From Bugula neritina (Eukaryota; Animalia; Bryozoa), in assembly GCA_964035545.1 (NCBI GenBank), contig OZ037767.1, forward strand, positions 30,768,628-30,832,627: DNA of 64,000 nt. The letters are read 5' to 3'. Both the position numbers and the translations under genes were made by a program. Below are positions 19,626 through 64,000 of this stretch, piece by piece (positions within the stretch are counted from its first letter, which is position 1; each line of letters starts with the position of its first letter). The notes below the pieces were generated by a model. It worked only from the letters and a program-made list of their open reading frames with translations. It ran no database searches and was not told the origin of the DNA.

Positions 19626-22600
19626 ATGGCTGAAGCAGATCATCCTGTAGAAGCAGAGTGTGGATTTTGTTTACAGAGAGGCGACCTTGAGAATCCAAAG
19701 TCTCTACCATGTGGTCACATTCACTGTTTACTTTGTCTTACTAGGAATGTTATGGTCAATCACATGATCAGGTGTCCCTTTTGCAGGTATGTTTTTTAAC
19801 ATCAGCATCTTTGCAACTTTTCACTTTTGTAATGGATGAAACTGAATGTAACAAACTTATATCTCTATTAGGGCATATTTAGAAAGTGTGTAAAATGAAG
19901 TAAACCTAGGATGTTTGTGTGTGTATTATATTTCATTATGTTGTACGATTACATGTGTTACAGAGCAGTGTTTGATGGTAGTATAGAGACTCTGCCTTCT
20001 GCTGATGTAGAGGACAACTCCACATCATGCTTTGTCTGTACTAAGAAGGGGATAAAGAATATCCCAGCTGTGATATACTGTACTGTGTGCAGTAAACTCT
20101 TTTGTGGGAAACATAGAGAGGTACTGATTTAATCATATTTTTGAAATCTATTAAGAATTTAGAATATATAGTTCATATTATGCAAGTCTTCATTTACTAA
20201 TAGTAATTATATATGATAATTTAATGTTGGTGTTAAATTTCTTTTTTCTGTGATTGCTTTTATACAAGCCACTCAATTTTGATATGATATTTAATGCTGT
20301 GTATATTTGCTTTGCTTTGAGACTCTAACTTTCAAACCAGTTCTCTATTCTGATGTGTATAATGTGCTCTCCAGTCACATGATGACGTGAGTGATGACCA
20401 CCAGCAGTTGACCATCTCAGAATACAGAATACAAGCTAAGAGACTGGAAAGAAGAGTTTGTTCTAAACATACAGATTCTCCTTACTCTATAGGATGTAGA
20501 GTCTGCCTTCAGCTGTTTTGTGTGCAGTGTTTGTCCCGGGCCAACTCTTGTGTTGGAGGTAGGATATTCGCTTTACTCATACTTTACCATAATTGCTTAG
20601 TAGTGCACTAACATCTGCTATGTATTTGGTGTATGTTTTGAAACGAAGGCTCACAGCACGAGATGGTTAGTCTGGATAACTTAGTGGAGGAGCTGATTAA
20701 TCTGGAGGGACTGGTTGCTGCAGAAGACAAGATGTCTGTTTTGATGAAACAGATCGCTAAAACTATATCTGACTTTGATACAGAGACTGATGACTTGCTG
20801 CATTTACTCTACAGGCAACGGGATGAGCAGGTACTTCAGTATTCAGTAGTCTTTCTACTTCTGTTTCCTGTTCTATTCTGATACTGAAACAGAAGAGTTA
20901 CTAGACATTCTCCATACACAGCGTGATGAACAGGTGTGATTGATATCACATTTTCTAGAATGTGTTTGTTTCCTGTCACACCATGTAAAGGTTTTAATGG
21001 TTTACTCGTATGTTTTAGTTGGCTGAGGTGAGACTAAAGTATGAGAAACTTGAAGAGGAGTTCTTAGCTAGTAGAAAGAAAACTAAAGATGTACTGGATG
21101 CATACATGGAGAGAGAAGTTGGAACTGTTTTGTCTGAACTTAGCAACTACAAAATGAAATTAGAAGCTCAACTCAGACAAAACAATCAGGTGTGTAGACA
21201 CTGAGAAGTTTGTGTTTTGGCAATAAAGAAACTATGTTGGTGTATTATAACATTATTAAAATTTTTACCAAATTTACTCAGCAGTGATCAGTAATGGGAG
21301 TTGTAATGTTAGATTTTGGAGACGGAGAAATAATGAGCTTATCTGACAACATTAGAGTTGGTTGTAGAAGCGAATATTGTATATCACCACATTGCGCTGT
21401 ACTTACAATCTAGAGACTGGGTGTGCAGATTATCTAAACACTGAGGGTTTTAATGGCACTATGCGCCCCTTACTTTCTGGAATATAGTTTTTATTTCATA
21501 ATTTTGTAGTTTTACCATTGATATTACATAAACTGATTATCAAACTTCTTCATTTTTATTTGTAATAGGAAGTTATTTAGTTTATTTATGTTTGCTTTAA
21601 TACCATGTTTTATTACTATTATTTTCATCAATCATGTCATTCACTGTCAAGTTTGCTTTTCACTAGTTTATCCTTCAGTGTCAGAGTTTGTGTAGAAGTT
21701 GAATTGCTTTTACTCTGCTACCTGAACCTGCATCATTCTCATTCTATTCACAGGTGGATCTAGTTGAAGGTTATGCAGAGATTAAGGATAGAATACAGAG
21801 ACTTGTATCTGTTGAGATACCTGAACTAGAACTGTGTGATGTCATGACTCTAGAGGTCAAAGGTTTGCATTATTAGAGTGTTTTTGAAATAATAATTTAC
21901 TGTAACACTCGTTGCTGTACTTGCTGTAACACTCATGTAATACTTATAGCGGAAAAGAGAGGCATAGAGGTAGATATAGTTCCTACTGCAGACGTATCTA
22001 TTAGTTTGGATCAAGGAGTGACAAATTCTACCCCTCCAGTTCCCAAGATTCTCAAACTCTTACAGACTGTTGAGGCTTCTAACAACTGCTACTCTGTGAG
22101 TAGATATGAGGACTTCACTTATGTGGGGGTGTACGGCGGGAAGGTGGACAGGATAGACGCCAACGGGAACATCACGAAATCACTAATAGCTAGTACGGGA
22201 TACGTGTTTGGTCTTACAGTGTACAAGCATCTGCTGTACACCTTAGTGAATTATAACCAAAATAATTGGAAGGTAAATGTGTACGACCTTACAGGGAATC
22301 AGGTGACCAGCTGGCCTCACAGTGATAAAAATGGATTCACTAACAAACTAACTATCGTTGATGATCAGGTTGTGGTCCCTGACAGGCATAGTAAAAGGCT
22401 AACTCTTTACTCTCTTACTGGAGAGGTAATTAAACATGTCTCCTCTTCTCTAATCAGTAATAACACTGTAGCTATATGTGCAGCAGACAGACATTGTGTA
22501 GTAGTATCTGATAAAGCCTCTTCCAAAGTATTTAAGTTAGACCTGACAACAGAGAAAGTCATCTGGACATGTAGGGATGTGTCTAATCCACAAGGTGTGA

Positions 22601-23173
22601 CGTGCTATAGAAGTAAATATATTCTCTTAACTGATTCTAGCAGTAAGACTGCTGTTTGGATTCTGGATTTGAAGACAGGTTAGTTGGGAAATATTATATT
22701 ATTTAATTGATGCCACTTTTAATTGTAATCTCGTCTCTAGTTATTCTCCTTTCATTACTGATTACTAAAGTTAATCACTAATTAATTCTGTTTTATGCAC
22801 TGTAAACGATTATTATAACACATAGAAAGACAAAATGCACTAGAAATTGTATTTAATATTTTGCACAATATCATAATTCACTTTCACCCTGAGCTGTACT
22901 ATACGATTTATATGTATTTATGCTGAGTAAGTTTAGTATGTCGCAACCTTTTTATGCAAAATGAAGAGAAAAAAAATCAATAATATTTATTGAGTACAGT
23001 ATATACTGTGTATTGTAGTACATTGTATTATTTCATTTCCAGGTGCTAAACTCTCCACGATAGAAAATCCAGCTGATGGTCTCACCAATGTGTTTGATTT
23101 CCATGCACACCGGAAGACTTTAGTTGTGCCCAGATGGGGGGAGAAGAAGGTTCAGTTCTATCAGCTGACGTGA
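19626..23173 (+). CDS. TRIM-like RING/B-box/B-box/coiled-coil/NHL-like beta-propeller protein, copy 1 (most divergent paralogue)
   Basis: Exons 19626-19786, 19964-20120, 20375-20558, 20649-20830, 21019-21189, 21754-21862, 21950-22678, 23043-23173 (TGA). C3HC4 RING (CGFC..LPCGHIHCLLC..CPFC), B-box1 (CFVC..YCTVCSKLFCGKH..H..H), B-box2 (CSKH..GCRVCLQLFCVQC), helical region, propeller repeats (VVVPDR, VVVSD, PQGVTC). No stop or frameshift seen. Confidence 0.88.
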
Positions 23174-24893
23174 GTAGGTAACTCTTTAGCCTGTGTTCTT
23201 GCATACCTTGTCTAGTCATAAGGGTTGTATCAGTTGGTTTGTGATGGAGAACAAAGGCAAAGCCTAGTATTTCAGGTCAGGAAATTGTTAGTAAATGGAT
23301 AATTTGGATGAAATAGGTAATGATAGGTTTGGTTTGCTGATTGGTTTACTAATACATCGAATTTTATTGCAGATGAAGTTTTATTTAAAATGTTTATTGA
23401 AAAAGAAATAGTCGTGTTTCAAAACCTACTGCTTTCTTCCGCTTAGTTTGGGGAGGGTGACTGAAAAATTATACAGTATCTATTGAGTATAATCATGTTC
23501 CCATTTATTTTTAATTTTGAGCTTAAATATATATATGCTAACGAGTCCTTGATTCTGGATTAGTGAAAGGTGGTTGTTAGTATTCATTAGCGTCATATAA
23601 TAGTATTATAATAAGAACTGTTCTTTGTAGATGAAGGAAGGAACGCATTGGTGCCACAATCTCCAACGGCGATTTAACTACTGGCAATGGAATGCTGGAA
23701 TCTAAATATTTTGGTAGAGGTTATTTCATCAGTGTTTACCATCATAGATTTGTCTTCCCAAGTAGACTAGCTTTCAGAGGAATTCCCCAGCTATTAGCAA
23801 TATTTTATCTGCAGACTTCAATTTTAATGTTTAGAAGTTGTTGGAATGTATATTCATGGATTGATGTGATTGGTTATTAGTTCATAGCTGTTTATGGGTT
23901 GATATGATTGGTTGTTAATGCTTCATAGCTATGTATGGGTTGGTATGATTGGCTACTGACGTTTATAGCTCTTTACATAATCAATAACGTAATTAGAAGA
24001 GAGATGACAATCAGTACTATACTGAAGTGTTGATCTTTGGTTTAGTTTTAATATGAGTGTAAAATGTTTATATCCTGTCCTGGAAAATGCTATAAATGTC
24101 GGAGAAGCCTATGGGTGATAATTTTGTATACTCTTCTTTATGATAAGTACATGGTGGCTTTTTCTCATAATCTTCTTGTATATGCTCTAGATCTCAGTGA
24201 TTTACTAATAAATATTTTCAAGCATATTTCAACTGAAGTTGCTATTGCTTGATATGTATCGCAAAATAAAAATTTGTAGCATTAATTTGAGTTTTGATAT
24301 AATTTATCATTTAGCAGTTTGGGTTACTACATATTAGATAAAACCAGTTATTAGTTATAATGCCAACGCACCTGTATTACTTGATGCACTAATGTTGTCA
24401 AATAATTGCCCAAATTCCCTCCCCCCCCTCCGGCAAGGATGATGTTATATTTCTCAACTTTTAGTTCAGACACTTACATTGGTGTAATATATATGAATGA
24501 GCAAGTTTAGTTTAAACTATTTCATAACAGTTTGATCTTAATAGTATAATTGGCTGAGAAATAAACTTCCAATTTATTTTAATCCGGCAGTCATTGGTTA
24601 TGTATATTGCCCTCTCTGAGTCTGCATGATTGATGACAATGGTGAAGGAAAGAGTAAAGAAACCGTTCATTTTTGTACTACTGCGGTAACAAACAAATAT
24701 CATTGATTTTTATTAAAAATACTCAGACGCTTTAGATACAAGGTATACTTTACACGCACATCGTATATGCATGCGAAATTATTGCATTATGCATTGCTAA
24801 GCGAGTTAGAACACGGGAGTCGTCTTTTCTACATGTCTATTGCTAATATTTTCGCAGTTGCAAGCTGCGAAAACCCGCATTAATACTTCCCTT

Positions 24894-25585: not shown

Positions 25586-28500
25586 ATGGCTGAAGCAGAG
25601 CCCAGGGAGATAGAGTGTGGGTTTTGTTTGTTAAAGGAAGGTCTTGAGAACCCAAAGTCTCTACCATGTGGTCACATACATTGTTTAGTTTGTCTAACTA
25701 GAAATTATGACGCTAATGACCTGATCAGATGTCCCTGGTGCAGGTAAGTTTTATTATAAACTATGTTATTCTCAGACTACAAGTGTATCTATTTAACTTC
25801 ATAGTGTGACCCTGATGCATGTTGAGTGTACTTTCTATTATATTCGGCATTATATGTGTTACAGAGAAGTGTTTGATGTGAGTATAGAGACTCTGCCTTC
25901 TGCTGATGTAGAGGACAACTCCACATCATGCTTTGTCTGTACTAAGAAGGGGATAAAGAATATCCCAGCTGTGATATACTGTACTGTGTGCAGTAAACTC
26001 TTTTGTGAGAAACATAGAGAGGTACTTTAGTGTTGACTCTCTTGTTTGAATAGTTGAATCTGCATAAAAAATGAAACCAGACAAAAACACCTGCCTTCCT
26101 GACATTCAATATCTTCTTTAGGTCCATGACATTGTTAGTGATGATCATCAGCAGATGACCATATCTGAATACAGAATACAAGCTAAGCGACTGGAAAGAA
26201 GAGTTTGTTCTAAACATACAGATTACCAAATATCTCTGGGATGTAAACTCTGTGCTCAACTGTTTTGTGTGCAGTGTTTATCTCAGGCCGACTCTTGTGT
26301 TGGAGGTGAAATTTTTATCTTGCTCCTGATACTATTTATTCACATTTAATGTGCATGATAATTGGAAAAAAAAAAATTTTACTATACTCTATAATGACTA
26401 CAACATTCTAGTCTGTTGGCTTGAATTAGTTACTAGAGTTGCCTCACACCTAGTAAATGAGATTTTATATATACAAATTATAGCAAATTGATAGCAATAT
26501 TTGGGATCATCTAACTGAAAGTCGTCTATCTGGAATGACACCCAAATCATTGTGGATTCTGTGACTGTTTTATCCTGTAACATTAACTGTAGTTTAGTAA
26601 TACATTTCCAGGTTCACTGCATGACATGGCTGGGTTAGATGACCTCATCAAGAAACTGGTGAATGTAGAAGAACTGATTACTACAGAAGACAAAGTATCT
26701 TCTCTCTTCAAACAACTTTCTAAAACTATATCTGACTTTGATACTGAAACAGGAGAGTTACTAGACATTCTCCATACACAGCGTGATGAACAGGTGTGAT
26801 TGGTGTCACATTTTCTAGAATGTGTTTGTTTCCTGTCACACCATGTAAAGGTTTTAATGGTTTACTCGTTTGTTTTAGTTGACTGAGGTGAGACTAAAGT
26901 ATGAGAAACTTGAAAAGGAGTTCTTAGCTAGTAGAAAGAAAACTAAAGATGCACTGGATGCATACATGGAGAGAGAAGTTGGAACTGTTTTGTCTGAACT
27001 GAGTAAAAGTAGAATGAAGATAGACGCTCAACTGAGACAAAACAATCAGGTGTGTAGAGTTGACATACAAGTAACTTGTGTTGAATAATTGAGTCTAAAG
27101 AACACAGTATTGTGTAAGTTGTACAACATTACTCATATTGTTAGAGTTTTTCTTTTTTACCAGTCTCTAGGTTTTCTTGTTGTTTGAACTGGTCTTAAAC
27201 TTATATGATAATTGTATCGCATGATTATCTACTGTACTTGAAAACAGTTTTGTTTGAGTGAATAAATGTAAATTGTTGAATTGATAGGATAGTTTGAAGA
27301 AAAGTGGGAAGTATTTTCAAAATTTTGAGAAAATCCTTGAGTGAACTAATGTTCCACTAGTGACTAAAGTACAAGTATATTTCATAGCTAGATGTTAAAG
27401 GGATAACTTCTGAACTCCTGTTTGGTTTTATATTCCAAAATGCAGTTTCAAAAGAGAAGCTTAAAAAGGTTTATGTTGATATTCATTCTCTCTATTAAAT
27501 ATTTTCTGATTATTGGAGAAGTTTTATTAAAACTTTCCAATCCAATTTAGAAGCTGGTTTAGCTGTGTGGCCTTTTTGATTTGCTAAAGCACTTAGCATG
27601 TTTTTATCAACTATCAGTGAGTCAGTGATATTCATTGAGTAGATTTTTTAAAGTTTTTATTCTGCATTAAACAAGAAAGAATCAGTTTTAATTTCACATT
27701 ATTGTTGCTATTCTTCATGTAATTATAGTTGATCTCTATTCACAGGTGGATCTAGTTGAAGGATATGCAGAGATTAAGGATAGAATACAGAGACTTGTAT
27801 CTGTTGAGATACCTGAACTAGAACTGTGTGATGTCATGACTCTAGAGGTCAAAGGTTAGGTAATATAAGCTGACTATTGTATATTCATGTAGTACTGTGT
27901 TACTGAATATGTTGTATTTATTTTTACTCTCTACATCGTAGTCAATCTATACTCTCTTATATTAATTACTAGATTTAATTGTATAGGAAAGATAGAACAT
28001 TACAACTCTTGTGTAGAATACAATAACCATACACACCAGTTTATCAACATTACTTCTACTTGTCATATGATACGGTGTAGAGATCTTTGTATATACTCCG
28101 TATAGTTTTATACAAGTTTGTGTATTCTTTGAAACCCAGCATTGAACTGTCATTATAATATTTTCTGCTACTATATAATATATTCACTGCTATTATATAA
28201 TATATTCACTGCTATTATATAATATATTCACTGCTATTATATAATATATTCACTACTATTATATAATATATTCACTGCTATTATATAATATATTCACTGC
28301 TATTATATAATATATTCACTACTATTATATAATATATTCACTGCTATTATATAATATATTCACTACTATTATATAATAGATTTCCTATAAACTCACCCTA
28401 TTTCTATATTCTTTATCACTCCATGTTGAACTATAATGTTATCTTTCCTATTGTATAACATTATCTTCACTACTGTTACATTACATTATATTCTCTACTG

Positions 28501-29956
28501 TTTTATGATATATTATTTCCATCACTAACATATAGTACTATCTTCACTATTATTATATAATGTTATATTTTCTGCTATTATATAATGTTATATTCCCTAC
28601 AAATAGTATAGTATAATAATTGTGTTTAAGTAGTAGATTCAGTACTATTTTATAATATATGTGATTTATGCTATTATTTAATTTAGTTCATTTATATATA
28701 CTTTACAGGAGAGAAGGGAGACATAGAAGTAGATATAGTTTCTACAGCAGACTTATCTATTAGTTTGGATCAAGGAGTGACAACTTCTACTCTTCCTAAT
28801 TCCCTCAAACTCTTTCAGTCTGTTGATGTTTATAATTATTGTGACTCAGTCTGTAGATATGAGGGTAACACTTATGTAGGGGTCAATGGTGGTGTAGATA
28901 GAGTAGATGAGAACTATAATGTTACTCAGTCATTTGTTACAGTCAGTGATTATGTGTTTGGTCTTACAGCATATAAAGATCAGCTGTACACTTTAGTGCG
29001 AGGTGGCCTTAATAATTGCAAGGTAGAAGTGTATGACTTTAGTGGGAATCAGGTGACCAGCTGGTCTCACAGTGATTGTGGTGATGTGTATATCAATAAA
29101 CTTGTTATAGTTGATGATCAGGTTGTAGTCCCTGATAGACAAAGTAAAAGACTCACAATCTACTCTCTTACTGGGGAGGTAATTAAACAAGTGCCCTGCT
29201 CTTTACTTAATAACAGTTTGGTAGCTATATGTGCAGCAGACAGACATTGTGTAGTAGTTTCTGATTTGAATTCCTCTCAAGTATTTAAGTTAGACCTGAC
29301 AACAAAGAAAGTCATCTGGACATGTAAGGATGTGACTAGACCACAAGGTGTGACCTGCTATAGAAGTAAATATATTCTTGTGACTAACCTCAGCAGTAAA
29401 ACTACTATCTGGATACTGGATGTGAAGACAGGTTAGTTGGTGTTTATTCTACCATATGGGAAGCTCTTGTACACAAACTATAGTTGGTTTGCATGTATGC
29501 TCTCAGTCTAACCTTTAGATGGAAGCTATTACATGCTATATCATCATATATTATTATTAACAAAGTATATGGTAGCTACTAAATATAGAAAACCTTTATC
29601 ATATATAATGCAGTATAACCCTGTATAGTCATTACCTATAATATTATCATATATAATATAGTTTCTTATTAACAGAGTATACAGTAGCTAGAGAGTATAG
29701 AAATCCTTTGTCTTATATAATGTAGTATAACCAGGTTCTTTATTGGTATATAATATAATATAATTTGATATTTGAGAACATAATATACTAAGCATAGGAT
29801 ATTGCATCATATCCCGTTACAGGCACACAGCTGGCTAAGATAGAAGATCCAACTATTAGAGAGAACAGTAATGTATTTGATCTCCATGTGTATAGAGACA
29901 CTCTGATTGTACCCAGATATAATGAGAAGAAAGTTCTGTTCTACCAGCTCAACTAA
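25586..29956 (+). CDS. TRIM-like RING/B-box/coiled-coil/beta-propeller protein, copy 2
   Basis: Exons 25586-25743, 25865-26021, 26122-26305, 26612-26793, 26879-27049, 27746-27854, 28709-29431, 29823-29956 (TAA). Same exon phases and motifs as copy 1; frame open throughout. Confidence 0.9.
28165..28380. repeat. 22-bp VNTR (CTACTATTATATAATATATTCA) in intron 6, copy 2
   Basis: About 9 units. Confidence 0.9.
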
Positions 29957-31613: not shown

Positions 31614-32729
31614 GTAAGTTGAATATTCAATATTGGCAAATACTGAAAGTTGTTAAATATCAATTTATGCTTGTACTTTTGGCCTTAAAATATTGTAATA
31701 TTTTTGAACCCGAATTGAAGGTTTTTTGTGATTAAATATATATCAATAGATGTGAACTCGACATTGGCCTTGGGACTGAGGTTCGCTGCACAATTTCAGC
31801 AACAACTTCAAGTTGAAGTTGTACTACAGTTTTAAGTCTAAGAGTGAGACCAAAGTTCAGTTTCATTTTGATTGTAAAATGATCAGTATTAATAATAAAT
31901 ATAATATGATTATTGCTAATTTGTTGTCTTATTACTAACGTCGTTTGATTTTTACTTTGATAGTGATTGTCTACACGCCTTAGATTCCTATACTGTAGTT
32001 ATACTTATATCTTTCAACAATTCAGCAAATTGACCTAATCTTAAAATTGATAGATGCTATTATTCAAATATACAAGTGATTTTAATTAGACAAGCATTAG
32101 CTTAAGAATTAGCATGAAAGCTAGTTTTGTTCTGAGTTTAATATTGACAATTGTAATGGATAGTATTTGCGCTTCCATATTTTTACAGTTTCTTTCCATA
32201 AAAAGTACCTAATCTTGTGAAATGAAGTGCTCTTCAGTTAATAAAGTTTTTAGCCAGCATGTTGGCAACTCTTTTTTTTAGTCAGATGAATGAGACATGT
32301 ATGAATTTTACAAAGTGTAACTTCTTACTTTCTAACTGACAGTTAAGCATCACAAGCCTAATCTATCTTTGCACATCAAATATTTACAAAAACATATAAT
32401 AAGTAGAAGATTCTATTTCCCTGAAATGATTTGGAACAGCAAATAGTGTCTCATACTTTAATGTCTTAAAAAGTATGGTTTTTGTGCCATTCAGCTAGAG
32501 TTTGAAGAAATAATCTCAATATATCAAATAATTAGTTTATTTAGTCTTTTTTGCATTCTAAATACTAAATTCACTTCACATGAACTAACCATGTATTTTC
32601 GTGATAACTAAGTGAACTAGTTAATCTAATATGTACACATAGTCTTGTAAACACTCTTCAGTTTCTTTTCTATAAAAATTATCTAATGTATATTTATTTT
32701 AGGTATTTTGACACATTTATTGAAACAAG

Positions 32730-46600: not shown

Positions 46601-47920
46601 ATTTAATAATTTGATTTTACATACACATAATAATATAAATTTATGTATTCTTTACAGAAGAGAAGAGAGACATGGAAGTAGATTTAGTTTCTACAGCAGA
46701 CGTATCTATTAGTTTGGATCAAGGAGTGACAACTTCTACTCTTCCTAATTCTCTCAAACTCTTGCAGTCTGTTGATGTTTCTAATGCTTGTTGGTCAGTC
46801 TGTAGATATGAGGGTAACACTTATGTAGGGCGGTATGGTGGAGTAGCCAGAGTAGATGAGAACTATAATGTTACTCAGTCATTTGTTACAGACAGTGGTT
46901 TTGTGTTTGGTCTTACAGCATATAAAGATCAGCTGTACACTTTAGCTTGTGAGGGCAGTAATTGGAAGGTAGAAGTGTATGACTTTAGTGGGAATCAGGT
47001 GACCAGCTGGTCTCACAGTGATACTAGTATGGGGTGTATCAATAAACTTGTTATAGTTGATGATCAGGTTGTAGTCCCTGATAGACCAAGTAAAAGAGTC
47101 ACAATTTACTCTCTTACTGGGGAGGTAATTAAACAGGTGCCCTGCTCTCTACTTAGTGACAGCTGTGTAGCTATATGTGCAGCAGACAGACATTGTGTAG
47201 TAGTTTCTGATTACAATTCCTCTCAAGTATTTAAGTTGGACCTGACAACAGAGAAAGTCATCTGGACATGTAAGGATGTGACTAACCCACAAGGTGTGAC
47301 CTGCTATAGAAGTAAATATATTCTTGTGACTATTTACAGCAGTAAAACTACTATCTGGATACTGGATGTGAAGACAGGTGAGTTGGTGTTTATTCTACCA
47401 TATGGGAAGCTCCTGTACACACACACTATTGTTGGTTTGCATGTATGCTCTCAGTCTAACCTTTAGATGAAAACTATTACATGCTATATCATCATATATT
47501 ATTATTAACAATGTATGTGGTAGCTAAAAAGTATACACAACATTTGCCATATATAATGCAGTATAATAATTAATATTACAGTCATTACATATAATATTAT
47601 ATATAATATAGTTTCTTATTAACAGAGTATACAGTAGCTAGAAAATATAGAAAACCTTTGTCTTATATAATGTAGTATAACCCTGTAATCAAGTTCTTTA
47701 TTGATATATAATACTCGTATAATAAAATTTGATATTTGAGAACAGAATGTGTTAAACAGAGGTTGTTACATCATTTCCTGTTACAGGCACACAGCTGGCT
47801 AAGATAGGAGATCCAACTGTTAGAGAGAATAGTCATGTACTTGATCTCCATGTGTATAGAGATACTCTGGTTGTACCCAGACATGATGAGAAGAAAGTTC
47901 TGTTCTACCAGCTCAAATAA
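43650..47920 (+). CDS. TRIM-like RING/B-box/coiled-coil/beta-propeller protein, copy 4
   Basis: Exons 43650-43807, 43929-44085, 44186-44369, 44658-44839, 44925-45095, 46136-46244, 46658-47377, 47787-47920 (TAA). Frame open; the putative first exon is interrupted by a foldback element. Confidence 0.88.
45157..45526 (-). mobile_element. Probable solo LTR (370 bp) in coding intron 5 of copy 4
   Basis: Insertion absent from copies 2, 3 and 5 (empty site AACACAGTATTGT). TGT...ACA termini; 4-bp flanks GTGT/GTAT (one mismatch); CCAAT and AATAAA motifs on the minus strand. Confidence 0.6.
46385..46572. repeat. 22-bp VNTR in intron 6, copy 4
   Basis: About 7-8 units. Confidence 0.85.
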
Positions 47921-49519: not shown

Positions 49520-52500
49520 GTAAGTTGAATATTGGCAAATACTGAAAGTTGTTATACCAATTTATGCTTGTACTTTTGGCCTTAAAATCTCGTAATATTT
49601 TTGTACCCGAATTGAAGTTTTTTTGGGATTAAATTTATATCACTAGATGTGAACTCGACATGGGCCTTGGGACTGAGGTTTGCTGCACAATTTCAACTTC
49701 AAGTTGTACTACAGTTATAAGTCTAAGACCAAAGTTCAGTTTCATTTTGATTGTAAAATGATTAATATTAATATTGAATATAATATTAATAATGCTAATT
49801 CGTTGTCCTAATACTAACCTTGTTTGTGTTTTACTCTGATGGTGATTGTCTTCAGGCCTTAGATTCTTATAGATATACTAATACTTATAGTTATAGTCAT
49901 ACTTATAGTTATACTCTTATAGTATAACTGTTATAGTTATATTTTTCAAAAATTCAGTAAATTGACTTAAACTTAAAATTTATAGATGTTTTTACTCAAA
50001 TATACAGGTCATTTTTATTTAGATGAGCATTAATGTAATGATTAGCATGAACGCTAGTTTTGTTTTGAGTTTAATATTGACAATTGTAATATATAGTATT
50101 TGTGCTTCCATATTTTTACAGTTTCTTGGCATAAAAAGTACCTAATCTTGTGAAAAAAAGTGCTCTTCAGTTAATAAAGTTTTCAGTCAGCATGTTGGCA
50201 AAGAACGTTGCCTGCTGCATTGTGCAACTCTTTTTTTAGTCAGATGAATGAGAAACGTATGAATTTTACCTCAACAAAGTATAACTTCTTACTTTCTAGC
50301 TGATGGTTAATCATCTATCATTAATAATGCATTTCTATCTTTGCACCTCAAATATTTACATAAACATGTAGCCTAATAAGTAGATGATTCTATTTTCCTG
50401 AAATGAGTTGGAACAGCAGATAGTGTCTTAAAACGTATGGTTTTTGTTCCATTCAGCTAGAGTTTGAAGCACTATTTTTTGTTCCTCTTATGTGATAGCC
50501 TACTATCTACTCTACTCCTTTTGGAAATAATTTGACAAGCTTTATATTAAGTTGATTTTATACCCGTAAGTCCACAGGTACTCAACATAAAATATTCTCA
50601 ATATATCAAATAATTAGTTCTTTTAGTCTTTTGTTTTCTAAATACTCACTTCACATGAACTAACCATGTAGCTCCATGATAATTACGTGAACACAGCTAT
50701 AGTTATGACTGCTAGTTAATCTAATATATACACATAGTCTTGTAAACATTGTTCAGTTTCTTTTCTATAAAAATTATCTAATGTATATTTATTTTAGGTA
50801 TTTTGACACATTTATTGAAACAAGATGGCTGAAGCAGAACCCAGGGAGATAGAGTGTGGGTTTTGTTTGTTAAAGGAAGGTCTTGAGAACCCAAAGTCTC
50901 TACCCTGTGGTCACATACATTGTTTACTTTGTCTAACTAGGAATGTTGATGTGAATGATCTGATCAGATGTCCTTGGTGCAGGTAAATTATATTACAAAC
51001 TATACTATTCTCAGACTACAAATATATCTATTTAACTTCATAGTGTGACTCTGATGCATGTTGAGTGTACTTTCTATTATATTCTGCATTATATATGTTA
51101 CAGAGAAGTGTTTGATGTGAGTATAGAGACTCTGCCTTCTGCTGATGTAGAGGACAACTTCACATCATGCACTGTCTGCACTAAGAAGGGGATAAAGAAT
51201 ATCCCAGCTGTTATATACTGTACTGTGTGCAGTAAACTCTTCTGTGGGAAACATAGAGAGGTACTTTAATGTTGATTATTCTTTCTGCGGAATTTAGCTG
51301 TGTAAAAATGAATAAAGAAAAAAATAACATAGTGATTTCTGACATGCAATATATTCCATAGTCACATGATGATACCAATGATGATCACCAGCAGATGACC
51401 ATCTCTGAATACAGAGTACAAGCTAAGAGACTGGAAAGAAGAGTTTGTTCTAAACATACAGACTACCAAATATCTCTGGGATGTAAACTCTGTGCTCAAC
51501 TGTTTTGTGTGCAGTGTTTATCTCGGACTGACTCTTGTGTTTGAGGTGAAATTTTTATATTGCTCCTAATATAATTTATTCACATTTAGTGTACATGATA
51601 ATTTGAAAGAAAAAAGTTTACTATACTCTTTAATGACTACACCATTGGCTTGAATTAGTTACTAGGGTTGCCTCACACCTAGTAAATGGGATTTTATATA
51701 TATAAATTATAGCAAATTGATAGCAATATCTGTGGCCATCTAACTGAAATGACACCCAAATCATTGTGGATTCTGTGACTGTTTTATCCTGTAAAATTAA
51801 CTGTAGTTTAGTAATACATTTTCAGGTTCACTACATGACATGGCTGGGTTGGATGACCTCATCAAGGAACTGGTGAATGTAGAAGAATTGATTACTACAG
51901 AAGACAAAGTATCTTCTCTATTCAAACTACTTTCTAAAACTATATCTGACTTTGATACTGAAACAGGAGAGTTACTAGACATTCTCCATACACAGCGTGA
52001 TGAACAGGTGTGATTGATATCACATTTTCTAGAATGTGTTTGTTTCCTGTCACACCGTGTAAAGGTTTTAATGGTTTACTCGTACGTTTTAGTTGACTGA
52101 GGTGCGACTAAAGTATGAGAAACTTGAAGAGGAGTTCTTAGCTAGTAGAAAGAAAACTAAAGATGCACTGGATGCATACATGGAGAGAGAAGTTGGAACT
52201 GTTTTGTCTGAACTGAGTAAAAGTAGAATGAAGATAGAAGCTCAACTTAGACAAAACAATCAGGTGTGTAGAGTTGAATACAAATAACTTGTGCTGAATA
52301 ATTGAGTCTAAAGAACACAGTATTGTGCAAATGGCGCAACATTACTCAAGTTGTTAGAGTTTTATATTATATTTTCAAAACAGTCTCTAGGTTTGCTTGT
52401 AAAACATTGTTTGAACTGGTTTTAAAATTATATGATAATTGTATCAAATGCTTATATGCTGTACTTGAAAACAATTTTGTTTAGGTGAATAAATGTAATT

Positions 52501-52587
52501 TCTTGAATTGATAGGATAGTTTGAAAAACGTGGGAAATATTTTCAAGATTTTGAGAAACCCTTATGTGAACTAATGTCCCACTAGTG

Positions 52588-52680
52588 CAGTGGTTCCCAA
52601 CTTTTTTCCTACTATTCCCCCTTTCATAATTATTTACTATTATTTTCCCGCCTTTAAAAAAGCGAAAATATTTTATGACT

Positions 52681-52745
<65 letters not shown>

Positions 52746-54312
52746 GCAATATATTTTGTTATATTATATTTGCATATCCTATGATTAAGATAACATTATT
52801 ATTATCGTTATGAAACACAGAGCAGTTCAGTTATTAATGTTATGGCTGCAGCTGATAATATTGTGCCAGCTTGCTTACGTCTGGCTCTGTGTTTGATCAG
52901 GCCCATCTTAGGTCACCTTGCAGGTTGAGGCAGTTTCTCTTCTCTTTGAATTGATGAGAATCCTACCTCAGACAGATAGGTGGTGCTGGATGGCACCAAA
53001 AATCTGCTTTGTCAGTTATGTGTGGGAAGAGTTTGCTTGTTGAAACTCACGATTATTTTAGGTAAAACTGGTGCATGTAAAAGTGGCACAGGTCATAATG
53101 GCACAAATAAAAAATTAAGTAGAAACGGCACACCGATGTTATATTATTACAAACTCAAACCCCAAACCCTCCTCTCTAAGCCCCCAACCCTTGAACATCT
53201 ACCCTACACTTCAGAACTCCAAGTACAAACCCTAAATCCTCACCTCAAAACCTTCTTTCAAACTCCAAACCCCCACCCCAAAATTGAAAACATATGCCAT
53301 TTTTTCCTACTTTTCCATTTGTGCTATTATTACCTGTACCATTTCTACTGGACGCTAACCCACAATACATCAACTTGAGAAAATTTCCTGTCACCCTTCA
53401 TTGCTGAATTGTGAACCAACTCAATAAAATCCTCCTGTAACACCTCTGAAAACTTGTCAACAAACCGTTGCAATGGGTCACATGTCAAGTTGAGAATCTA
53501 GCTCTTTCTTTGTCAGAGGTAACGCAGAGAAATGCCGTTAAAAGTCGATTAAAATTTCAGAGAAATGCCTAGAAAGATTTTTAGAAAACGATCTGGAACA
53601 GTTGGTGTCCGGGGAGAAAAAATGGCAGATAGTAATGGCACAAATGAAAAATTAAGTAAAAATGGCACATTTTCAATATTAGCATTGTAGATTTGAGTTG
53701 GGGGGTCAGGCATTCAGGATGGCGGGTTTGGGTTTGGCAAATTCTAACACCATTGTGCATTTTTACCTGTGCCATTTTTTATCTAAAATCGTAACAGGTT
53801 CTTCTCCTGTAAAATTTCATCGAGTGTGGGGAAAAACACCATGTTTTTAATAGACGCCACCACTTTAGTGTAACTTTAAAAACATTGATGCTGCTATGAA
53901 AAGCAATGATATGAAGATGCACTCCTGCATTTTTAGGCTTAGACTATTCAGTGTAGCAAATATATTCATTAGGTATGTAGTATACAGTTTATAGAGATTG
54001 ACTTGCATGGCTGCTAAAAGTTGACCTGTTGGTTTTTGCATCTTTTTGGCCTTCATTCGAAGTAGCACAGAGAAGAGTTATGGTAGAGTAATTATTAAAC
54101 ACATTTATGTAGAAGTAAACCAAAATTGCAAAATATATGGTTTGGTTAAATAAATGAACTAAAATGAAGGTTTATAGATATACATATACATGTAACTTGC
54201 AAGAGTTCAAAAACCGTCAACAAAGTGCGTAAATTTTTCAAAGTCCAAATTCCCCCCCTAAAATATCCAAATTCTTCCCTAGGGGAGAATTACCCCAGGT
54301 TGGGAACCACTG
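52588..54312 (-). mobile_element. Second copy of the same hAT element at the orthologous intron site, duplicated with the gene
   Basis: Same TIRs, TSD CACTAGTG (52580-52587, 54313-54320), near-identical interior, plus a (TA)n tract at ~52685-52742. Confidence 0.92.
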
Positions 54313-55079
54313 CACTAGTGACTAAAGTACAAGCAAATTTCATAGTTAGATGCTAAAGGGATGATTTCTGAACTCCTGTTTGTTTTTATATTCCAAAATG
54401 CGGTTCTAAAAAAGAAGCTTAAAAAGGTTTATGTTGATATTCATTCTCTTTATTAAAAATTCGACGATTGGAGAAGTTTTATTAAGATTTTTTTAATCGA
54501 ATTTAGAAGCTGGCTTGTAAAGGCACTTAGCATGTTTTTATTAGATAACAGTGAGTCAGTGACATTTATTGAGTATTTATTAAGTTTTTATTCTGCATCA
54601 ACCAAGAAAGAATCAGCTTTAATTTCACATTATTGTTGCTAATCTTCCTGTAATTGTAGTTGATCTCTATTCACAGGTGGATCTAGTTGAAGGATATGCA
54701 GAGATTAAGGATAGAATACAGAGACTTGTATCTGTTGAGATACCTGAACTAGAACTGTGTGATGTCAGGACTCTAGAGGTCAAAGGTTAGTTGGTATAAG
54801 CTGACTATTGTATATTCATGTAGTACTGTGTTACTGAATATGTTGTATTTATGTTTCCTATCTACATCACAGTATAGCTCTACTCTCTTATATTAATTAC
54901 TAGATTTAATTGTATAGGAAAGATAGAACATTACAACTCATGTATAGAATACAATAACCATACATACCAGTTTATCAACATTACTTCTACTTGTCATATG
55001 ATACAGTGTAGGATCTTTGTATATACTCACTATACTTTTATACTCTTTGAAACCCCATTTTGATCTATCGTTATACTTG

Positions 55080-55535
55080 CTACTATTATATCATATATTC
55101 ACTACTATTTTATAATATATTCACTACTATTATATAATATATTCACTACTATTATTTAATATATTCACTACTATTATATAATATATTTACTACTATTATA
55201 TAATATATTCACTGCTATTATATAATATATTCACTATTATTATATAATATATTCACTGCTATTATATAATATATTCACTATTATTATATAATATACTCAC
55301 TGCTATTATATAATATATTCACTACTATTATATAATATATTCACTGCTATTATATAATATATTCACTGCTATTATATAATATATTCACTGCTATTATATA
55401 ATATATTCACTGCTATTATATAATATATTCACTACTATTATATAATATATTCACTACTATTATATAATATATTTACTACTATTATATAATATATTCACTA
55501 CTATTATATCATATATTCACTACTATTTTATAATG
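55080..55535. repeat. 22-bp VNTR in intron 6, copy 5
   Basis: About 20 units. Confidence 0.92.
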
Positions 55536-58500
55536 TTATGTTAACAGCTATTATATAATATATTTCCTACAAACTCAGTATATTTCTATATTCTTTATCA
55601 CTCCATGTTGAACTATAATGTTATCTTCACTATTATATAACATTATCTTCACTACTGTTACATTATATTATATTCTCTACTGATTTATGATATATTATTT
55701 CCATCACTAACATATAGTACTATCTTCACTATTATTATATAATGTTATATTCTCTGCTATTATATAATGTTATATTCCCTACAAATAGTATAATATAATA
55801 ATTGTGTTTAAGTAGTAGATTCAGTACTATTTTATAATATATTTACTTTATGCTATTATTTACTTTACTACATGTATATATACTTTACAGGAGAGAAGAG
55901 AGACATAGAAGTAGATTTAGTTTTTACAGCAGACGCATCTATTAGTTTGGATCAAGGAGTGACAACTTCTACTCTTCCTAATTCTCTCCAACTCTTGCAG
56001 TCTGTTGATGTTTCTAATGCTTGTTGGCCAGTTTGTAGATATGAGGGTAACACTTATGTAGGATTAACTGGTAGAGTAGACAGAGTAGATGAGAACTATA
56101 ATGTTACTCAGTCATTTGTTAGAGTCAGGGGTGTTGTGTTTGGTCTTACAGCATATAAAGATCAGCTGTACACTTTAGTGCGTGATGAAAGTAATAGTTG
56201 GAAGGTAGAAGTGTATGACTTTAGTGGGAATCAGGTGACCAGCTGGACCCATAGTGATAATGTTGCGTGGACCAATAAACTTGTTATAGTTGATGATCAG
56301 GTTGTAGTCCCTGATAGGCAAAGTAGTAGACTCACAATCTACTCTTTTACTGGGGAGGTAATTAAACAAGTGCCCTGCTCTCTACTTAGTAACAATTGGG
56401 TAGCTATATGTGCAGCAGACAGACATTGTGTAGTAGTTTCTGATTGCAATTCCTCTCAAGCATTTAAGTTAGACCTGACAACAGAGAAAGTCATCTGGAC
56501 ATGCAAGGATGTGACTAAACCACAAAGTGTGACCTGCTATAGAAGTAAATATATTCTTGTGACTAACCTCAGCAGTAAAACCACTATCTGGATACTGGAT
56601 GTGAAGACAGGTTAGTTGGTGTTTATTCTACCATATGGGAAGCTCTTGTACACAAACACACATTATAGTTGGTTGGCATGTATGCTCTCAGTCTAACCTT
56701 TAGATGGAAGCTATTACACGCTATATCATCATATATTATTATTAACAAAGTATATGGTAGCTAAAAAGTATACAAAACATTTGCCATATACAATGCAGCA
56801 TAAATTTATACTCATTACAGATAATATTATCATATACAATATAGTTTCTTATTAACAGAGTATACAGTAGCTAGCAAGTATAAAAATCCTCTGTCTTATA
56901 TAATGTAGTATGACCCTGTAGTGGGGTTTTTGTTGACATAACAATAGAGAAAGTAATATGTTAAATAAAGAATATTACATCATATCCTGTTACAGGCACA
57001 CAGCTGGCTAAGATAGAAGATCCAACTGTTAGAGAGAATAGCCATGTACTTGATCTCCATGTGTATAGAGACACTCTGATTGTCCCCAGACATAATGAAA
57101 AGAAAGTTCTGTTCTACCAGCTCAAATGAACAGGTATTATGTAATATTGTGTTTTATATTCAAAGGGGATCTCTTGTTTTTTTTAATCTATATTGATAAA
57201 TATATTTCATGCTGAGACTTTAAACCTGTAAATTACTGAATTCACGATTTGTTTTCATTTGCTCATGTATTATCCTCTAATCTTTTCACTGCTGTCAATC
57301 TTTATCTCAGTAAATGAAGTTTTATAATCTTTGACAATATTATTCTATATGATAGTGTAATGTACTTCCTGTTATGTTGATACTCACATCTGATTGGTGT
57401 ATATTTTAGGTCATGTGGAGATAACCCTTACACTGTGTCAAAATGCTTGCTAGTTCTTGAGTACACCTGAAAATATCTGAGGAGTTGCCTTCTTATTCTT
57501 AGAATGTCCCAGTCAGTGCCAACTGTTTATATTGAATATTGTTTAGTAAATTGTAGCAACTTCTTAGTATTTGTCTTTTACTTACCACTTGGTTCTTTGA
57601 TAATGAAAACAATCTTTTACAATAATAGCCATTATATACTGATAGTGAAATGATAATTGCATTTTGTTCGGGTAAATACATGTAGGTTTGCATGCAGTTA
57701 CTGGCTTTATTATACATTATAATATCATTTGTGATTTGCTGAACAAAAACTTATAATATAATTGTTTTTTTTCCATATTTAACTTTATTGTTTTTTACTT
57801 CCAAAAATTCTTTTGACAACTGTTCTAGTGATTGTGGTTGCTTGTAACAAATTTTGGTTGCAGCACCTAACGTTTTATGGAAAGCTTGTGATTGAGATTT
57901 TTTCAAATGCAATATAAATAATTATTATGTTCCTGTTTTCCTCCTTCTTGATGTGCACTAGTTCCACCCTAAATCAAACTGTAGGCAAAATTATTGAGTT
58001 GATTATATGTTGAACAATATGATTCTTCAGCAGTTTGAAAATTGTTGTTTTAAATTCATTTTTATTAGTAAGATTTCGAAGCACAAATCACTTGAATGCT
58101 GCAACTAATGAGAACTCATGAATTCACTGACAATTCTCATGTAACTCACATATCCATATTCATGTATAATTTACATTGTAGCAGGTATATGCAGTGTACA
58201 GCAGGTGTGCACAATTTATCAGAAGTTCACTCTGGTAGATGTACATACTGTAGCAAACATACAGTTTATATCTTACAAATTTTGTGGTTGTAAAAAACTT
58301 TAACCACTGGTTTTTCTTTCAACTGTTACAACATTCCTACATATTTTTTAATATACAAATACAGCTTATAACGAAGACAAGTCTAAAAGGTTGATAGCTA
58401 GACTATCAATAAGTTAGTTGAAATTGGCGATTAGCATCAGTTGTGAATATGAAATAGTAAATGTGAACTTGTTTTGTGCACTACTGCTGTAGCAAGTAAA

Positions 58501-60068: not shown

Positions 60069-63000
60069 ATGGCTGAAGCAAAACCCAGGGAGATAGAATG
60101 TGGGTTTTGTTTGTTAAAGGAAGGTCTTGAGACCCCAAAGTCTCTACCCTGTGGTCACATACATTGTTTACTTTGTCTAACTAAAAATGTTGATGTGAAT
60201 GACCTGATCAGATGTCCTTGGTGCAGGTAAATTATATTACATACTATATGCTATTCTCAGACTACAAGTGTATCTATTTAACTTCATAGTGTGACTCTGA
60301 TGCATGTTGAGTGTACTTTCTATTATATTCGGCATTATATGTGTTACAGAGAAGTGTTTGATGTGAGTATAGAGACTCTGCCTTCTGCTGATGTAGAGGA
60401 CAACTCCACATCATGCTTTGTCTGTACTAAGAAGGGGATAAAGAATATCCCAGCTGTGATATACTGTACTGTGTGCAGTAAACTCTTCTGTGGGAAACAT
60501 AGAGAGGTACTTTAATGTTGATTATTCTTTCTGCGGAATTTAGCTGTGTAAAAATTAATAAAGAAAAAAACAACATAGTGATTTCTGACATGAAATATAT
60601 TTTATAGTCACATGATGATACCAATGATGATCACCAGCAGTTGATCATATCAGAATACAGAGTACAAGCTAAGAGACTGGAGAGAAAAGTTTGTTCTAAA
60701 CACACAGACTACCAAATATCTCTGGGATGTAAACTCTGTGCTCAACTGTTTTGTGTGCAGTGTTTATCTCGGACTGACTCTTGTGTTGGAGGTGAAATTT
60801 TTATATTGCTCCTATTACTATTTATTCACATTTAATGTACATGATAATTGTGAAAAAATATTTACTATATTCTATAATGACTACAACATTCTTGTCTGTT
60901 GGCTTGAATTAGTTACTCACACCTAGTAAATGGGATTTTATATATACAAATTATAGCAACCTGGTAGCAGTATTTGTGGTCGTCTAACTGAAAGTCGTCT
61001 AACTGAAAGTCTTACACCCAAATCATTGTGGATTCTGTTAATGTTTTATCCTGTAAAATTAACTGTAGTTTAGTAATACATTTCCAGGTTCAGCCCATCC
61101 CATGCTCAGTCTGGATGACCTCATCAAGGAACTGGTAAATGTAGAAGAACTGACTACTACAGAAGACAAAGTATCTTCTCTATTCAAACAACTTTCTAAA
61201 ACTATATCTGACTTTGATACTGAAACAGGAGAGTTACTAGACATTCTCCATACACAGCGTGATGAACAGGTGTGATTGATGTCACATTTTCTAGAATGTG
61301 TTTGTTTCCTGTCACACCATGTAAAGGTTTTAATGGTTTACTCGTATGTTTTAGTTGGCTGAGGTGAGACTTAAGTATGAGAAACTTGAAGAGGAGTTCT
61401 TAGCTAGTAGAAAGAAAACTAAAGATGCACTGGATGCATACATGGAGAGAGAAGTTGGAGCTGTTTTGTCTGAACTGAGTAAAAGTAGAATGAAGATAGA
61501 TGCTCAACTCAGACAAAACAATCAGGTGTGTAGAGTTGAGATACAAGTAACTTGTGTTGAATTATTGAGTCTGGTTTAAAATTATATGCTAATTGTATCG
61601 CATGATTTTCTGTTGTACATGAAAACAGTTTTGTTTTGGTGAATAAATGTAAATTGTTGAATCGATAGGATAGTGTGAAGAATCTGGGAAGTATTTTCAA
61701 GATTTTGAGAAACCCTTGAGTGAAGTAATGTTCCACTAGTGACTAAAGTACAAGTATATTTCATAGTTAGATGTTAAAGGGATATTTTCTGAACTCTTGT
61801 TTGTTTTTATATTCAAAAAAGTGGTTTTTAAATGTAGCTTAAAAAGATCTAAGTTAATATTTATTCTCTCTATTCAAAATGTTCTGGTTATTGGAGAAGT
61901 TGTATTAAAATTTTCAAATCAAATTTAGAAGCTGGTTTAGCTATGTGGCCTTTTTGATTTGCTAAAGCACTTTTTATTAACTATCAGTGGGTCAGTGATA
62001 ATCATCGAGTATTTATGAAATTTTTATATTGCACAAACAAGAAAGAATCAGCTTTAATTTCACATTATTTTTGCTAATCTTCCTTTAATTACAGTTGACC
62101 TCTATTCACAGGTGGATCTAGTTGAAGGATATGCAGAGATTAAGGATAGAATACAGAGACTTGTATCTGTTGAGATATCTGAACTAGAACTGTGTGATGT
62201 CATGACTCTAGAGGTCAAAGGTTAGTTGGTATAAGCTGACTATTGTATATTCATGTAATACTGTGTTACTGAATATGTTGTATTTATGTTTACTATCTAC
62301 ATCATAGTCATTCTATACTCTCTTATATTAATTACTAGATTTAATTGTATAGGAAAGATAGAACAATACAACTCATGTATAAAATACAATACCATGCATA
62401 CCAGTTTACAAACATTACTTCTACTTGTCATATGATACGGTGTAGAGATCTTTGTATATACTCACTATACTTTTATACTCTTCATTAATCCATGTTGAAC
62501 TAGCATTATATTTACTATTCTATAATATATTCACTACTTTTATATAATATATTCACTACTATTATATAATATATTTACTACTATTATATAATATATTCAC
62601 TACTATTATATAATATATTCACTACTATTATATAATATACTCACTACTATTATATAATATATTCACTACTATCATATAATATATTTACTATTCTATAATA
62701 TATTCACTACTTTTATATAATATATTCACTACTATTATATAATATATTTACTACTATTATATAATATACTCACTGCTATTATATAATATATTCACTACTA
62801 TTATATAATATATTCACTACTATTATATAATATATTCACTGATATTATATAATATATTCACTACTATTATATAATATACTCACTGCTATTATATAATGTA
62901 TTCACTACTATTATATAATATATTCACTACTATTATATAATATATTCACTACTATTATATATTATATTCACTGCTATTATATAATATATTCACTACTATT

Positions 63001-64000
63001 ATATAATATATTCACTACTATTATATAATATATTCACTACTATTCTATAATATATTCACTACTTTTATATAATATATTCACTGCTATTATATAATATATT
63101 CACTACTATTATATAATATATTCACTACTATTATATAATATATTCACTACTATTATATAATATATTCACTACTATTCTATAATATATTCACTGCTATTAT
63201 ATAATATATTCACTGCTATTATATAATATATTCACTGCTATTATTTAATAGACTTCCTACAAACTCACTTCATTTGTTGTATTCACTATTATATACCATT
63301 ATCTTCACTACTGTTACATTACATTATATTCTCTGTTGTTTTATGATATATTATTTCCATCACTAACATGTAGTACTATTTTTACTATTAATATATAATG
63401 TTATATTCACTGCTATTATATAATGTTATATTCCCTACAAATAGTATAGTATAATATATTTAAGTAGTATATTAAGTACTATTTTATAATATGTTTACTT
63501 TATGCTATTATTTACTTTACTACATTTATATATACTTTACAGGAGAGAAGAGAGACATAGAAGTAGATTTAGTTTCTGCAGCAGACGTTTCTATTAGTTT
63601 GGATCAAGGAGTGACAACTTCTACTCTTCCTAATTCCCTCGAACTCTTTCAGTCTGTTGATGTTTCTGATTATTGTTACTCAGTCTGTAGATATGAGGGT
63701 AACACTTATGTAGGACTGCCTGGTAGAGTAGACAGAGTAGATGAGAACTATAATGTTACTCAGTCATTTGTTACAGTCAGTGGTTCTGTGTTTGGTCTTA
63801 CAGCATATAAAGATCAGCTGTATAGTTTAGTGCGAGGTGGCCTTAATAATTGGAAAGTAAATGTGTATGACTTTAGTGGTCATCAGGTGACCAGCTGGTC
63901 TCACAGCGACAATGTTGGGTATAGCAATACTTTTGTTATAGTGGATGATCAGGTTGTAGTCCCTGATAGACAAAGTAAAAGACTCACAATCTACTCTCTT
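60069..64000 (+). CDS. TRIM-like RING/B-box/coiled-coil/beta-propeller protein, copy 6 (3' end beyond window)
   Basis: Exons 60069-60226, 60350-60506, 60608-60791, 61088-61269, 61355-61525, 62112-62220, 63543->64000. Frame is open to the window edge (..VVVPDRQSKRLTIYSL). Confidence 0.88.
62505..63250. repeat. 22-bp VNTR in intron 6, copy 6
   Basis: About 33 units. Confidence 0.92.

Follow-up and report, generated by a model that had tools for sequence, protein, structure and literature searches.

To our knowledge, no immune receptors have been described from the phylum Bryozoa, and the question raised by a tandem gene array in Bugula neritina is whether its products, TRIM-like proteins that end in a beta-propeller, could form a repertoire for recognition inside the cell. 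We analysed a stretch of 64,000 nucleotides, here called the window (GenBank assembly GCA_964035545.1, contig OZ037767.1, forward strand; position in the genome C3:30768628-30832627), in which an earlier note, made from the letters alone, had described tandem TRIM-like E3 ligases with hypervariable loops confined to one face of the propeller. Several of the checks proposed in that note were run, namely structure prediction with column entropy by structural class, site models with recombination screening (M1a/M2a and the pairwise homoplasy index, PHI) and a genome-wide count of family members. We consider it likely that the array belongs to an expressed family of TRIM-NHL-type ligases in which the effector half is held constant and the top-face loops of the propeller are diversified by selection, forming a germline-encoded, intracellular recognition repertoire.

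Architecture, fold and expression of the family

Each gene consists of 8 exons, and copy 3, which encodes approximately 608 amino acids (aa) and has GT..AG at all exon borders as read directly in the sequence, served as the reference model:

32730-38469, + strand: copy 3, whole gene
32730-32887, + strand: exon 1, RING
33009-33165, + strand: exon 2, B-box-like zinc finger 1
33266-33449, + strand: exon 3, B-box-like zinc finger 2
33616-33797, + strand: exon 4, presumed coiled coil
33883-34053, + strand: exon 5, presumed coiled coil
36423-36531, + strand: exon 6
37216-37941, + strand: exon 7, blades 1-5 (242 codons, 726 nt, a symmetric phase-1 exon)
38336-38469, + strand: exon 8, end of blade 5 and blade 6

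The TRIM-like character of the proteins was supported from both ends. Exon 1 encodes a C3HC4 RING with all eight zinc ligands (C-x2-C-x14-C-x-H-x2-C-x2-C-x11-C-x2-C), a motif kept in 10 array copies; in Pfam it matched PF00097 with 21.2 bits (cut-off 21) and several other RING models with E = 5e-5 to 5e-4. The exons were searched singly, which lowered the Pfam scores: exon 3 reached 21.4 bits for the B-box family PF00643, below the cut-off of 24.1, and exon 2 gave sub-threshold ANCHR-like B-box and AN1 signals. A Cys/His spacing is visible. Comparable sub-threshold B-box matches were obtained with full-length proteins of the bryozoan Watersipora. Exons 4 and 5 are charged, matched no Pfam domain and presumably encode the coiled coil. 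The intact RING, and that feature alone, suggests that the proteins may be active as E3 ubiquitin ligases. Neither a signal peptide nor a membrane segment is present in the protein model, which starts MAEAEPREIEC, and the N terminus is of the RING/B-box type with no NACHT domain.

For the C-terminal domain, Pfam searches of the propeller exon gave weak matches to PQQ_2 and other propeller models, all below their cut-offs, and no match to SPRY; because they gave no NHL match either, the propeller was placed by fold and profile search. AlphaFold2 modelled copy 3 exon 7, with 108 relatives in the alignment, as five four-stranded blades with a predicted local distance difference test score (pLDDT) of 91.5, and a complete Watersipora C-terminal domain as six four-stranded blades with an N-terminal closing strand (pLDDT 92.1); the strand patterns of the two coincide on alignment. 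In Foldseek the best matches, at template-modelling (TM) scores of 0.68-0.78, were all NHL domains, those of Brat, Thin, Mei-P26 and TRIM2. A profile of the family gave E-values from 7e-12 to 4e-10 with the NHL chains of Brat, TRIM3, Thin and TRIM2 (7e-12 to 1e-7 when TRIM71 is included). The N-terminal half found its best match in the RING and B-box of TRIM2. Because Foldseek, the profile and the TRIM2-like N-terminal half agree, we assign the family to a TRIM-NHL type that has diverged and lacks a filamin domain.

Contigs that lack the introns show that the family is spliced and expressed. The contigs came from four public runs (X1, X3, X4 and X5) of four studies, presumed to be RNA, and were placed on window positions 32700-38400. 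Six of the seven predicted copy 3 introns (1, 3, 4, 5, 6 and 7) were matched to the base by intron-skipping contigs, with GT..AG joints at 32887/33009, 33449/33616, 33797/33883, 34053/36423, 36531/37216 and 37941/38336.

A single contig of run X3 carries the joint 36531 to 38336, leading from exon 6 straight to exon 8 and skipping the 726-nt propeller exon. Because exon 7 is symmetric (phase 1-1), the resulting product is in frame and lacks blades 1-5; the joint may reflect an isoform, stem from a paralogue or have arisen as an artefact of assembly.

Variation and selection across the propeller

A propeller blade is an antiparallel meander of four strands, and for this reason its B-C and D-A loops share a face, opposite that of the A-B and C-D loops; in WD40 and NHL propellers the B-C/D-A face is by convention the top, ligand-binding face. 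Sites were assigned from DSSP of the AlphaFold models, and not from variability, to top loops (B-C and D-A), bottom loops (A-B and C-D), strands and an N-terminal linker. Classes defined by entropy, which had given a ratio of nonsynonymous to synonymous divergence (dN/dS) of 2.5, were dropped as circular, and the DSSP-defined partitions were used instead. In copy 3 the top-face loops are the following:

37338-37346, 37392-37400, 37452-37460, 37512-37526, 37581-37613, + strand: top-face loop codons of exon 7, from DSSP of the AlphaFold model
37647-37658, 37707-37730, 37776-37787, 37836-37850, 37899-37916, + strand: remaining top-face loop codons of exon 7, from DSSP of the AlphaFold model
38356-38385, + strand: D5-A6 loop in exon 8, by homology to the complete Watersipora model
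38431-38442, + strand: B6-C6 loop in exon 8, by homology to the complete Watersipora model

Mean column entropy was 1.01 in the top loops as compared with 0.25-0.27 in every other class. The variable patches that the earlier note had read from copies 2-6 are all present in the alignment (DVYNYCD/DVSNSCW/DVSNACW/DVSNACW/DVSDYCY; VN-GG/LHSGR/RY-GG/LT-GR/LP-GR), as are their single-codon indels, which occur in three loops, and the last exon does contain the two extra patches (R-ENS-x and R-[YCHNS][NDG]-EKK). The alternate turns YEGNTY, DENYNV, YKDQLY, DFSG, VDDQV and ADRHC are near-invariant, again as described.

The same note had expected dN/dS above 1 in the patches, and this is what we found. 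In the main test set of 13 close paralogues (exons 7 and 8, 287 codons, gapped columns skipped pairwise), dN/dS by the method of Nei and Gojobori (NG86) was 1.73 in the top loops (bootstrap confidence interval (CI) 1.11-2.86), 0.69 in the bottom loops, 0.42 in the strands and 0.64 in the linker; maximum-likelihood (ML) omega with shared branch lengths was 1.95, 0.32, 0.53 and 0.42, respectively. Fixing omega_top at 1 in the ML partition model cost 19.1 log-likelihood units (likelihood-ratio test (LRT) statistic 38.2, p = 6.5e-10). Because recombination is present, the model was refitted to three segments, each with its own tree, which yielded omega_top of 2.00, 2.16 and 1.74 (p = 4e-4, 8e-5 and 7e-3). 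Top-loop dN, at 0.21-0.26, is about twice the exon dS (0.11-0.13) and also about twice the divergence of intron 7 (0.104), a yardstick limited to the eight array copies with alignable introns because the introns of the second cluster and of the chromosome-4 copy are not homologous.

Site models place the selected positions on the same face. Comparison of M1a with M2a assigned 12% of sites to omega 5.8 with an LRT statistic of 164, a value that is over-stated because recombination inflates tree-based site tests; M2a was used for localisation only, and the claim of selection rests on the tree-free bootstrap and the segment-wise results. Among the 23 sites with a posterior above 0.95, 16 lie in top loops, six in strands (five of them abutting a top loop), one in the linker and none in a bottom loop, and the 16 fall within 69 of the 287 columns (Fisher p = 1.7e-6). 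The proposed confinement to one face is thus upheld: variable sites occupy the B-C and D-A loops together with adjoining residues, and no selected site falls in the A-B and C-D loops. A composition like that of antibody complementarity-determining regions had also been proposed, and it holds for the aromatic residues and fails for serine: at the 23 sites enrichment is 6.6-fold for Trp, 3.2-fold for Tyr, 3.1-fold for His, 2.3-fold for Cys and between 1.5- and 1.8-fold for Asn, Gly and Arg, whereas Ser is depleted (0.55-fold).

The effector half behaves differently from the top loops. Exons 1-6 of ten array copies gave dS 0.110, dN 0.035 and omega 0.32, and are under purifying selection; their near-invariance, recorded in the earlier note, corresponds to 90-100% identity between copies.

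Indels in three loops, and a 22-bp minisatellite that adjoins the exon, could point to a mutational hotspot or to misaligned indels as the source of the patches. This explanation, which we regard as largely refuted and highly improbable, meets a dS of 0.148 in the top loops and 0.145 in the strands; since the two are equal, the patches are not a synonymous hotspot, and the raised synonymous divergence that the earlier note had named as contrary evidence was not observed. Moreover, gapped columns were skipped, the selected sites lie mostly in ungapped loops, and the minisatellite is absent from other clusters that have the same pattern.

The pattern recurs outside the array. Two subfamilies on chromosome 6 show their variation in these loops too. 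Among 25 Watersipora paralogues, compared as proteins only, entropy was 1.39 in top loops and lower in bottom loops (0.64, p = 1e-5), in strands (0.61, p = 3e-11) and in the N-terminal half (0.43). Because the same loops vary in Watersipora, the pattern is a property of the bryozoan family and not of this array alone.

Several findings weigh against reading the family as a selected recognition repertoire. Recombination is present and inflates tree-based site tests. When only the eight copies whose introns can be aligned are used, the bootstrap CI of omega_top (0.92-2.99) just includes 1, and in the two chromosome-6 subfamilies omega_top is 1.18 and 1.13 versus 0.43-0.71 for bottom loops and strands, a weaker effect in the same direction. 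Faces were assigned by DSSP and propeller topology, not by geometric mapping, and the exon 8 loop borders were transferred by homology from the Watersipora model rather than taken from a model of the protein itself. PF01436 (NHL) matched neither the propeller exon nor the Watersipora proteins. Some of the contigs are only 95-99% identical and may derive from paralogues or other strains, so that expression of copy 3 in particular is not proven. Two genes of the 12 in the array (copy 5 and L014, described below) carry disabling lesions, provided that the assembly is correct; this fits birth-and-death turnover. Finally, E3 activity, the type of ligand (protein or RNA) and an immune or conflict role are all features that we infer.

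Part of this list would also suit a rival account, in which unconstrained top loops merely drift while gene conversion and purifying selection hold the rest of the protein alike: the loops tolerate indels, the chromosome-6 estimates and the eight-copy interval lie close to or include 1, and the recombination that is detectable can yield false positives in site models. Relaxed constraint alone is nevertheless insufficient, and quite unlikely as the explanation, because omega_top significantly exceeds 1 in a non-circular partition test and in all three segments on their own trees, because top-loop dN is twice both exon dS and intron divergence, and because the A-B and C-D loops, which are equally exposed, show omega of 0.32-0.69 and no selected site. 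That the same positions vary in independent subfamilies and in Watersipora also speaks against drift and for diversifying selection on the top face.

Blades 4-5 (exon 7 residues approximately 172-242; 37731-37941 in copy 3) are near-identical between the chromosome-3 and chromosome-6 subfamilies, which are approximately 70% identical overall and diverge mostly in blades 1-3. The conserved blades may form a fixed docking surface.

Exchange between paralogues, family spread and possible ligands

The patchwork sharing of loop variants points to their reshuffling among paralogues by recombination or gene conversion. Between 53 and 56% of informative site pairs are phylogenetically incompatible, and with PHI the eight array copies gave p = 0.007, the full set of 13 p = 0.067. 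Identical variants recur in non-sister copies: SDY together with LP-GR in loci L003 and L005 (the latter being copy 6), RGGLNN in L005 and L008, RDESNSW in L002 and L010, and RVGNTSW in L011 and L012. Between the array (L001) and the second cluster and chromosome-4 copy (L003, L007 and L009), exon 7/8 dS is 0.114, as low as within the array, and intron 7 is unrelated save for approximately 20 nt at each splice site. Low exon divergence beside unrelated introns suggests exchange or gene conversion restricted to the exons, or else replacement of the introns.

A 22-bp minisatellite with the unit TATAATATATTCACTGCTATTA lies 100-360 bp upstream of the hypervariable exon, with 1-34 copies per gene, and occurs in the window at four places:

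28154-28382: 22-bp minisatellite, intron 6
46389-46574: 22-bp minisatellite, intron 6
55080-55564: 22-bp minisatellite, intron 6
62513-63250: 22-bp minisatellite, intron 6

It is also found in L002, L004, L011 and L014 and was absent from all other clusters examined. As a recombination signal of the whole family it was rejected, being confined to this array.

The genome-wide count was made by a six-frame search, which revealed at least 151 propeller exons in the B. neritina genome, nearly all of them open, in clusters on chromosomes 3, 4, 5, 6, 7, 8 and elsewhere (at least 8 chromosomes); the published assembly comprises 216.00 Mb in 9 chromosomes (PMC11480708). The only named full-length relatives are proteins of Watersipora subatra, 579-626 aa long and labelled 'uncharacterized' or 'TRIM2-like'; a homologue search with the Watersipora propeller returned Watersipora paralogues alone, and the 436 library relatives are mostly unnamed single-exon fragments. 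The family of this cheilostome bryozoan is large, expressed and probably lineage-specific. No account of it turned up in full-text searches of the literature, which covered, among others, the B. neritina genome note (PMC11480708) and the Flustra genome paper.

We propose that the constant half (RING, two putative B-boxes and a presumed coiled coil) works together with a six-bladed NHL-type propeller of conserved scaffold, whose B-C and D-A loops would have been pushed apart between paralogues by diversifying selection. The top face would give each paralogue an intracellular target of its own; ubiquitination of that target, or signalling, by the RING would follow, as for TRIM5 and finTRIM. The targets would, we infer, be pathogens or allogeneic tissue. 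A fuller version, which we put forward only tentatively, has more than 150 germline TRIM-NHL sensors acquire their specificities from diversifying selection together with exon-restricted conversion, which would shuffle loop 'cassettes' even across chromosomes, and deploys them against viruses, transposons or symbionts.

The ligand could be protein or RNA, because the nearest structural relatives include RNA-binding NHL domains. The family might accordingly consist of RNA-binding regulators comparable to Brat, LIN-41 and Mei-P26, whose top face keeps pace with rapidly changing RNAs (for example transcripts of viruses or transposons) or with germline conflict. The closest structures and profile matches include the Brat-RNA and TRIM71-RNA complexes, and the Tyr, Trp, His, Arg and Asn enriched at selected sites can stack on bases or hydrogen-bond to them; yet the NHL domains of TRIM2, TRIM3 and Thin, which are not established as sequence-specific RNA binders, match equally well. 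This alternative, which differs from the repertoire that we favour in ligand type alone, seems unlikely to us.

Bryozoans are colonial, and the family might instead set fusion or rejection between colonies of different genotype. A hypervariable propeller face combined with shuffling of repeats or cassettes is the pattern of the fungal HET-E/HNWD proteins (PMC1805685, PMC2873952). Action at the cell surface is nonetheless improbable because the protein model has no signal peptide; by analogy with HET-E, a cytoplasmic role after fusion is possible. The diversity measured here is between paralogues, not alleles, and a family of 150 members would be unusual for allorecognition, whose loci are typically few and hyper-polymorphic. 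We therefore judge a function in allorecognition very unlikely, and retain the broader reading of a selected intracellular repertoire.

Known systems share parts of this organisation. TRIM-NHL proteins (TRIM class VII, or Marin's subfamily C: TRIM2, TRIM3, TRIM32/Thin, TRIM71/LIN-41, Brat and Mei-P26) have the order of RING, B-box or B-boxes, coiled coil and six-bladed NHL propeller that is predicted here, and supply the best structural (TM 0.68-0.78) and profile (E approximately 1e-11) matches. Canonical members are few, single-copy and slowly evolving 'group 1' TRIMs (PMC2533329), whereas the bryozoan family, in which at least 150 paralogues occur in tandem and the propeller face is under positive selection, lacks the filamin domain and gives no significant Pfam NHL match. 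With TRIM5alpha, finTRIM and the group 2 B30.2/SPRY TRIMs it shares lineage-specific tandem arrays, a constant effector of RING plus B-box plus coiled coil, and selection on the target-binding surface loops (PMC2533329, PMC3137616); its propeller is of the NHL and not the B30.2/SPRY type, and the likeness is one of functional analogy, not of membership. Group 2 TRIMs are reported to be absent from invertebrates, fast-evolving TRIM arrays being SPRY-bearing and vertebrate-specific (PMC2533329). HET-E, HET-D and HNWD of Podospora anserina, which are intracellular non-self recognisers, likewise combine a hypervariable propeller interaction face with diversifying selection and exchange between paralogues (PMC1805685, PMC2873952). 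They differ in joining a WD40 propeller to NACHT and HET rather than to a RING ligase and in shuffling repeat units within and between genes, and, belonging to another kingdom, offer an analogy only.

TRIM-NHL proteins are classic cases of developmental regulators that are conserved and low in copy number, and here the NHL propeller appears to have been diversified as a recognition module on a ubiquitin-ligase chassis in an invertebrate, with the evolutionary signature of antiviral restriction factors and fungal propeller-based non-self receptors. If the reading is true, the family would correspond to TRIM5/finTRIM or to fungal HET-E, with a propeller as its basis, and would be a concrete entry point to bryozoan immunity, symbiont control or non-self recognition; its approximately 150 top faces on one scaffold would form a natural library that could inform the engineering of binders.

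The array and its surroundings

Self-comparison of the window revealed a tandem array with a repeat unit of approximately 9 kb, one + strand gene in each unit and 85-96% identity in the non-coding DNA. The window holds six gene units; a blastn search with the copy 3 exons extended the array to 12 units across approximately 90 kb. Close relatives are located on chromosome 4 and, in opposite orientation, at a distance of 430 kb from the array. The limits given previously for the array, 21950 and 64000, need correction, since the gene of copy 1 begins at approximately 19686 and the array continues for approximately 50 kb past the window end. Besides copy 3, the window contains the following copies:

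19686-23200, + strand: copy 1; exons 1-7 mapped by blastn of the copy 3 exons, exon 7 at 21950-22678, open reading frame (ORF) 22006-22683
25586-29956, + strand: copy 2; exon 1 25586-25743, exon 2 25865-26021, exon 3 26122-26305, exon 4 26612-26793, exon 5 26879-27049, exon 6 27746-27854, exon 7 28709-29431, exon 8 29823-29956
43650-47920, + strand: copy 4; exon 1 43650-43807 to exon 7 46658-47377, exon 8 47787-47920
50825-57129, + strand: copy 5; exon 1 50825-50982 to exon 7 55891-56610, exon 8 56996-57129
60069-64000, + strand: copy 6; exon 1 60069-60226 to exon 6 62112-62220, exon 7 from 63543

Copy 1 is a more diverged gene of the same type, with a propeller exon approximately 68% identical. 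Exon 7 of copy 6 crosses the window end and is intact beyond it in the genome. In copy 5 the final complete codon of exon 3 (51542-51544) reads TGA in frame instead of the GGA of the other copies, a premature stop provided that the assembly is correct; the propeller exon of copy 5 is still open. In L014 (C3:30838045-30841686), the first unit past the window end, exon 7 is frameshifted near codon 214, and this locus is probably the second pseudogene of the 12-gene array. Pfam searches of ORFs in the first 19.6 kb of the window matched no other gene, and Rfam matched no RNA in the window.

Two short stretches of the otherwise invariant N-terminal half take discrete, haplotype-like forms that alternate among array copies: SHDDLN, AHDIVN or VHDIVS in the first 6 codons of exon 3 (33266-33283 in copy 3), and SLHDMAG, SDHKMLS or SAHPMLS in the first 8 codons of exon 4 (33618-33641).

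An insertion of approximately 1.6 kb in intron 5 is common to copies 3 and 5 (34485-36060 and 52733-54310) and does not occur in copies 2, 4 and 6. It contains an ORF of 132 aa that matched nothing in Pfam. Transcript-like contigs with internal joints of their own include pieces of the insertion, which probably represents a repeat element. Positions 40169-42282, which lie between copies 3 and 4, form a self-complementary tract of approximately 2.1 kb that is nearly pure (TA)n, with approximately 10% GC.

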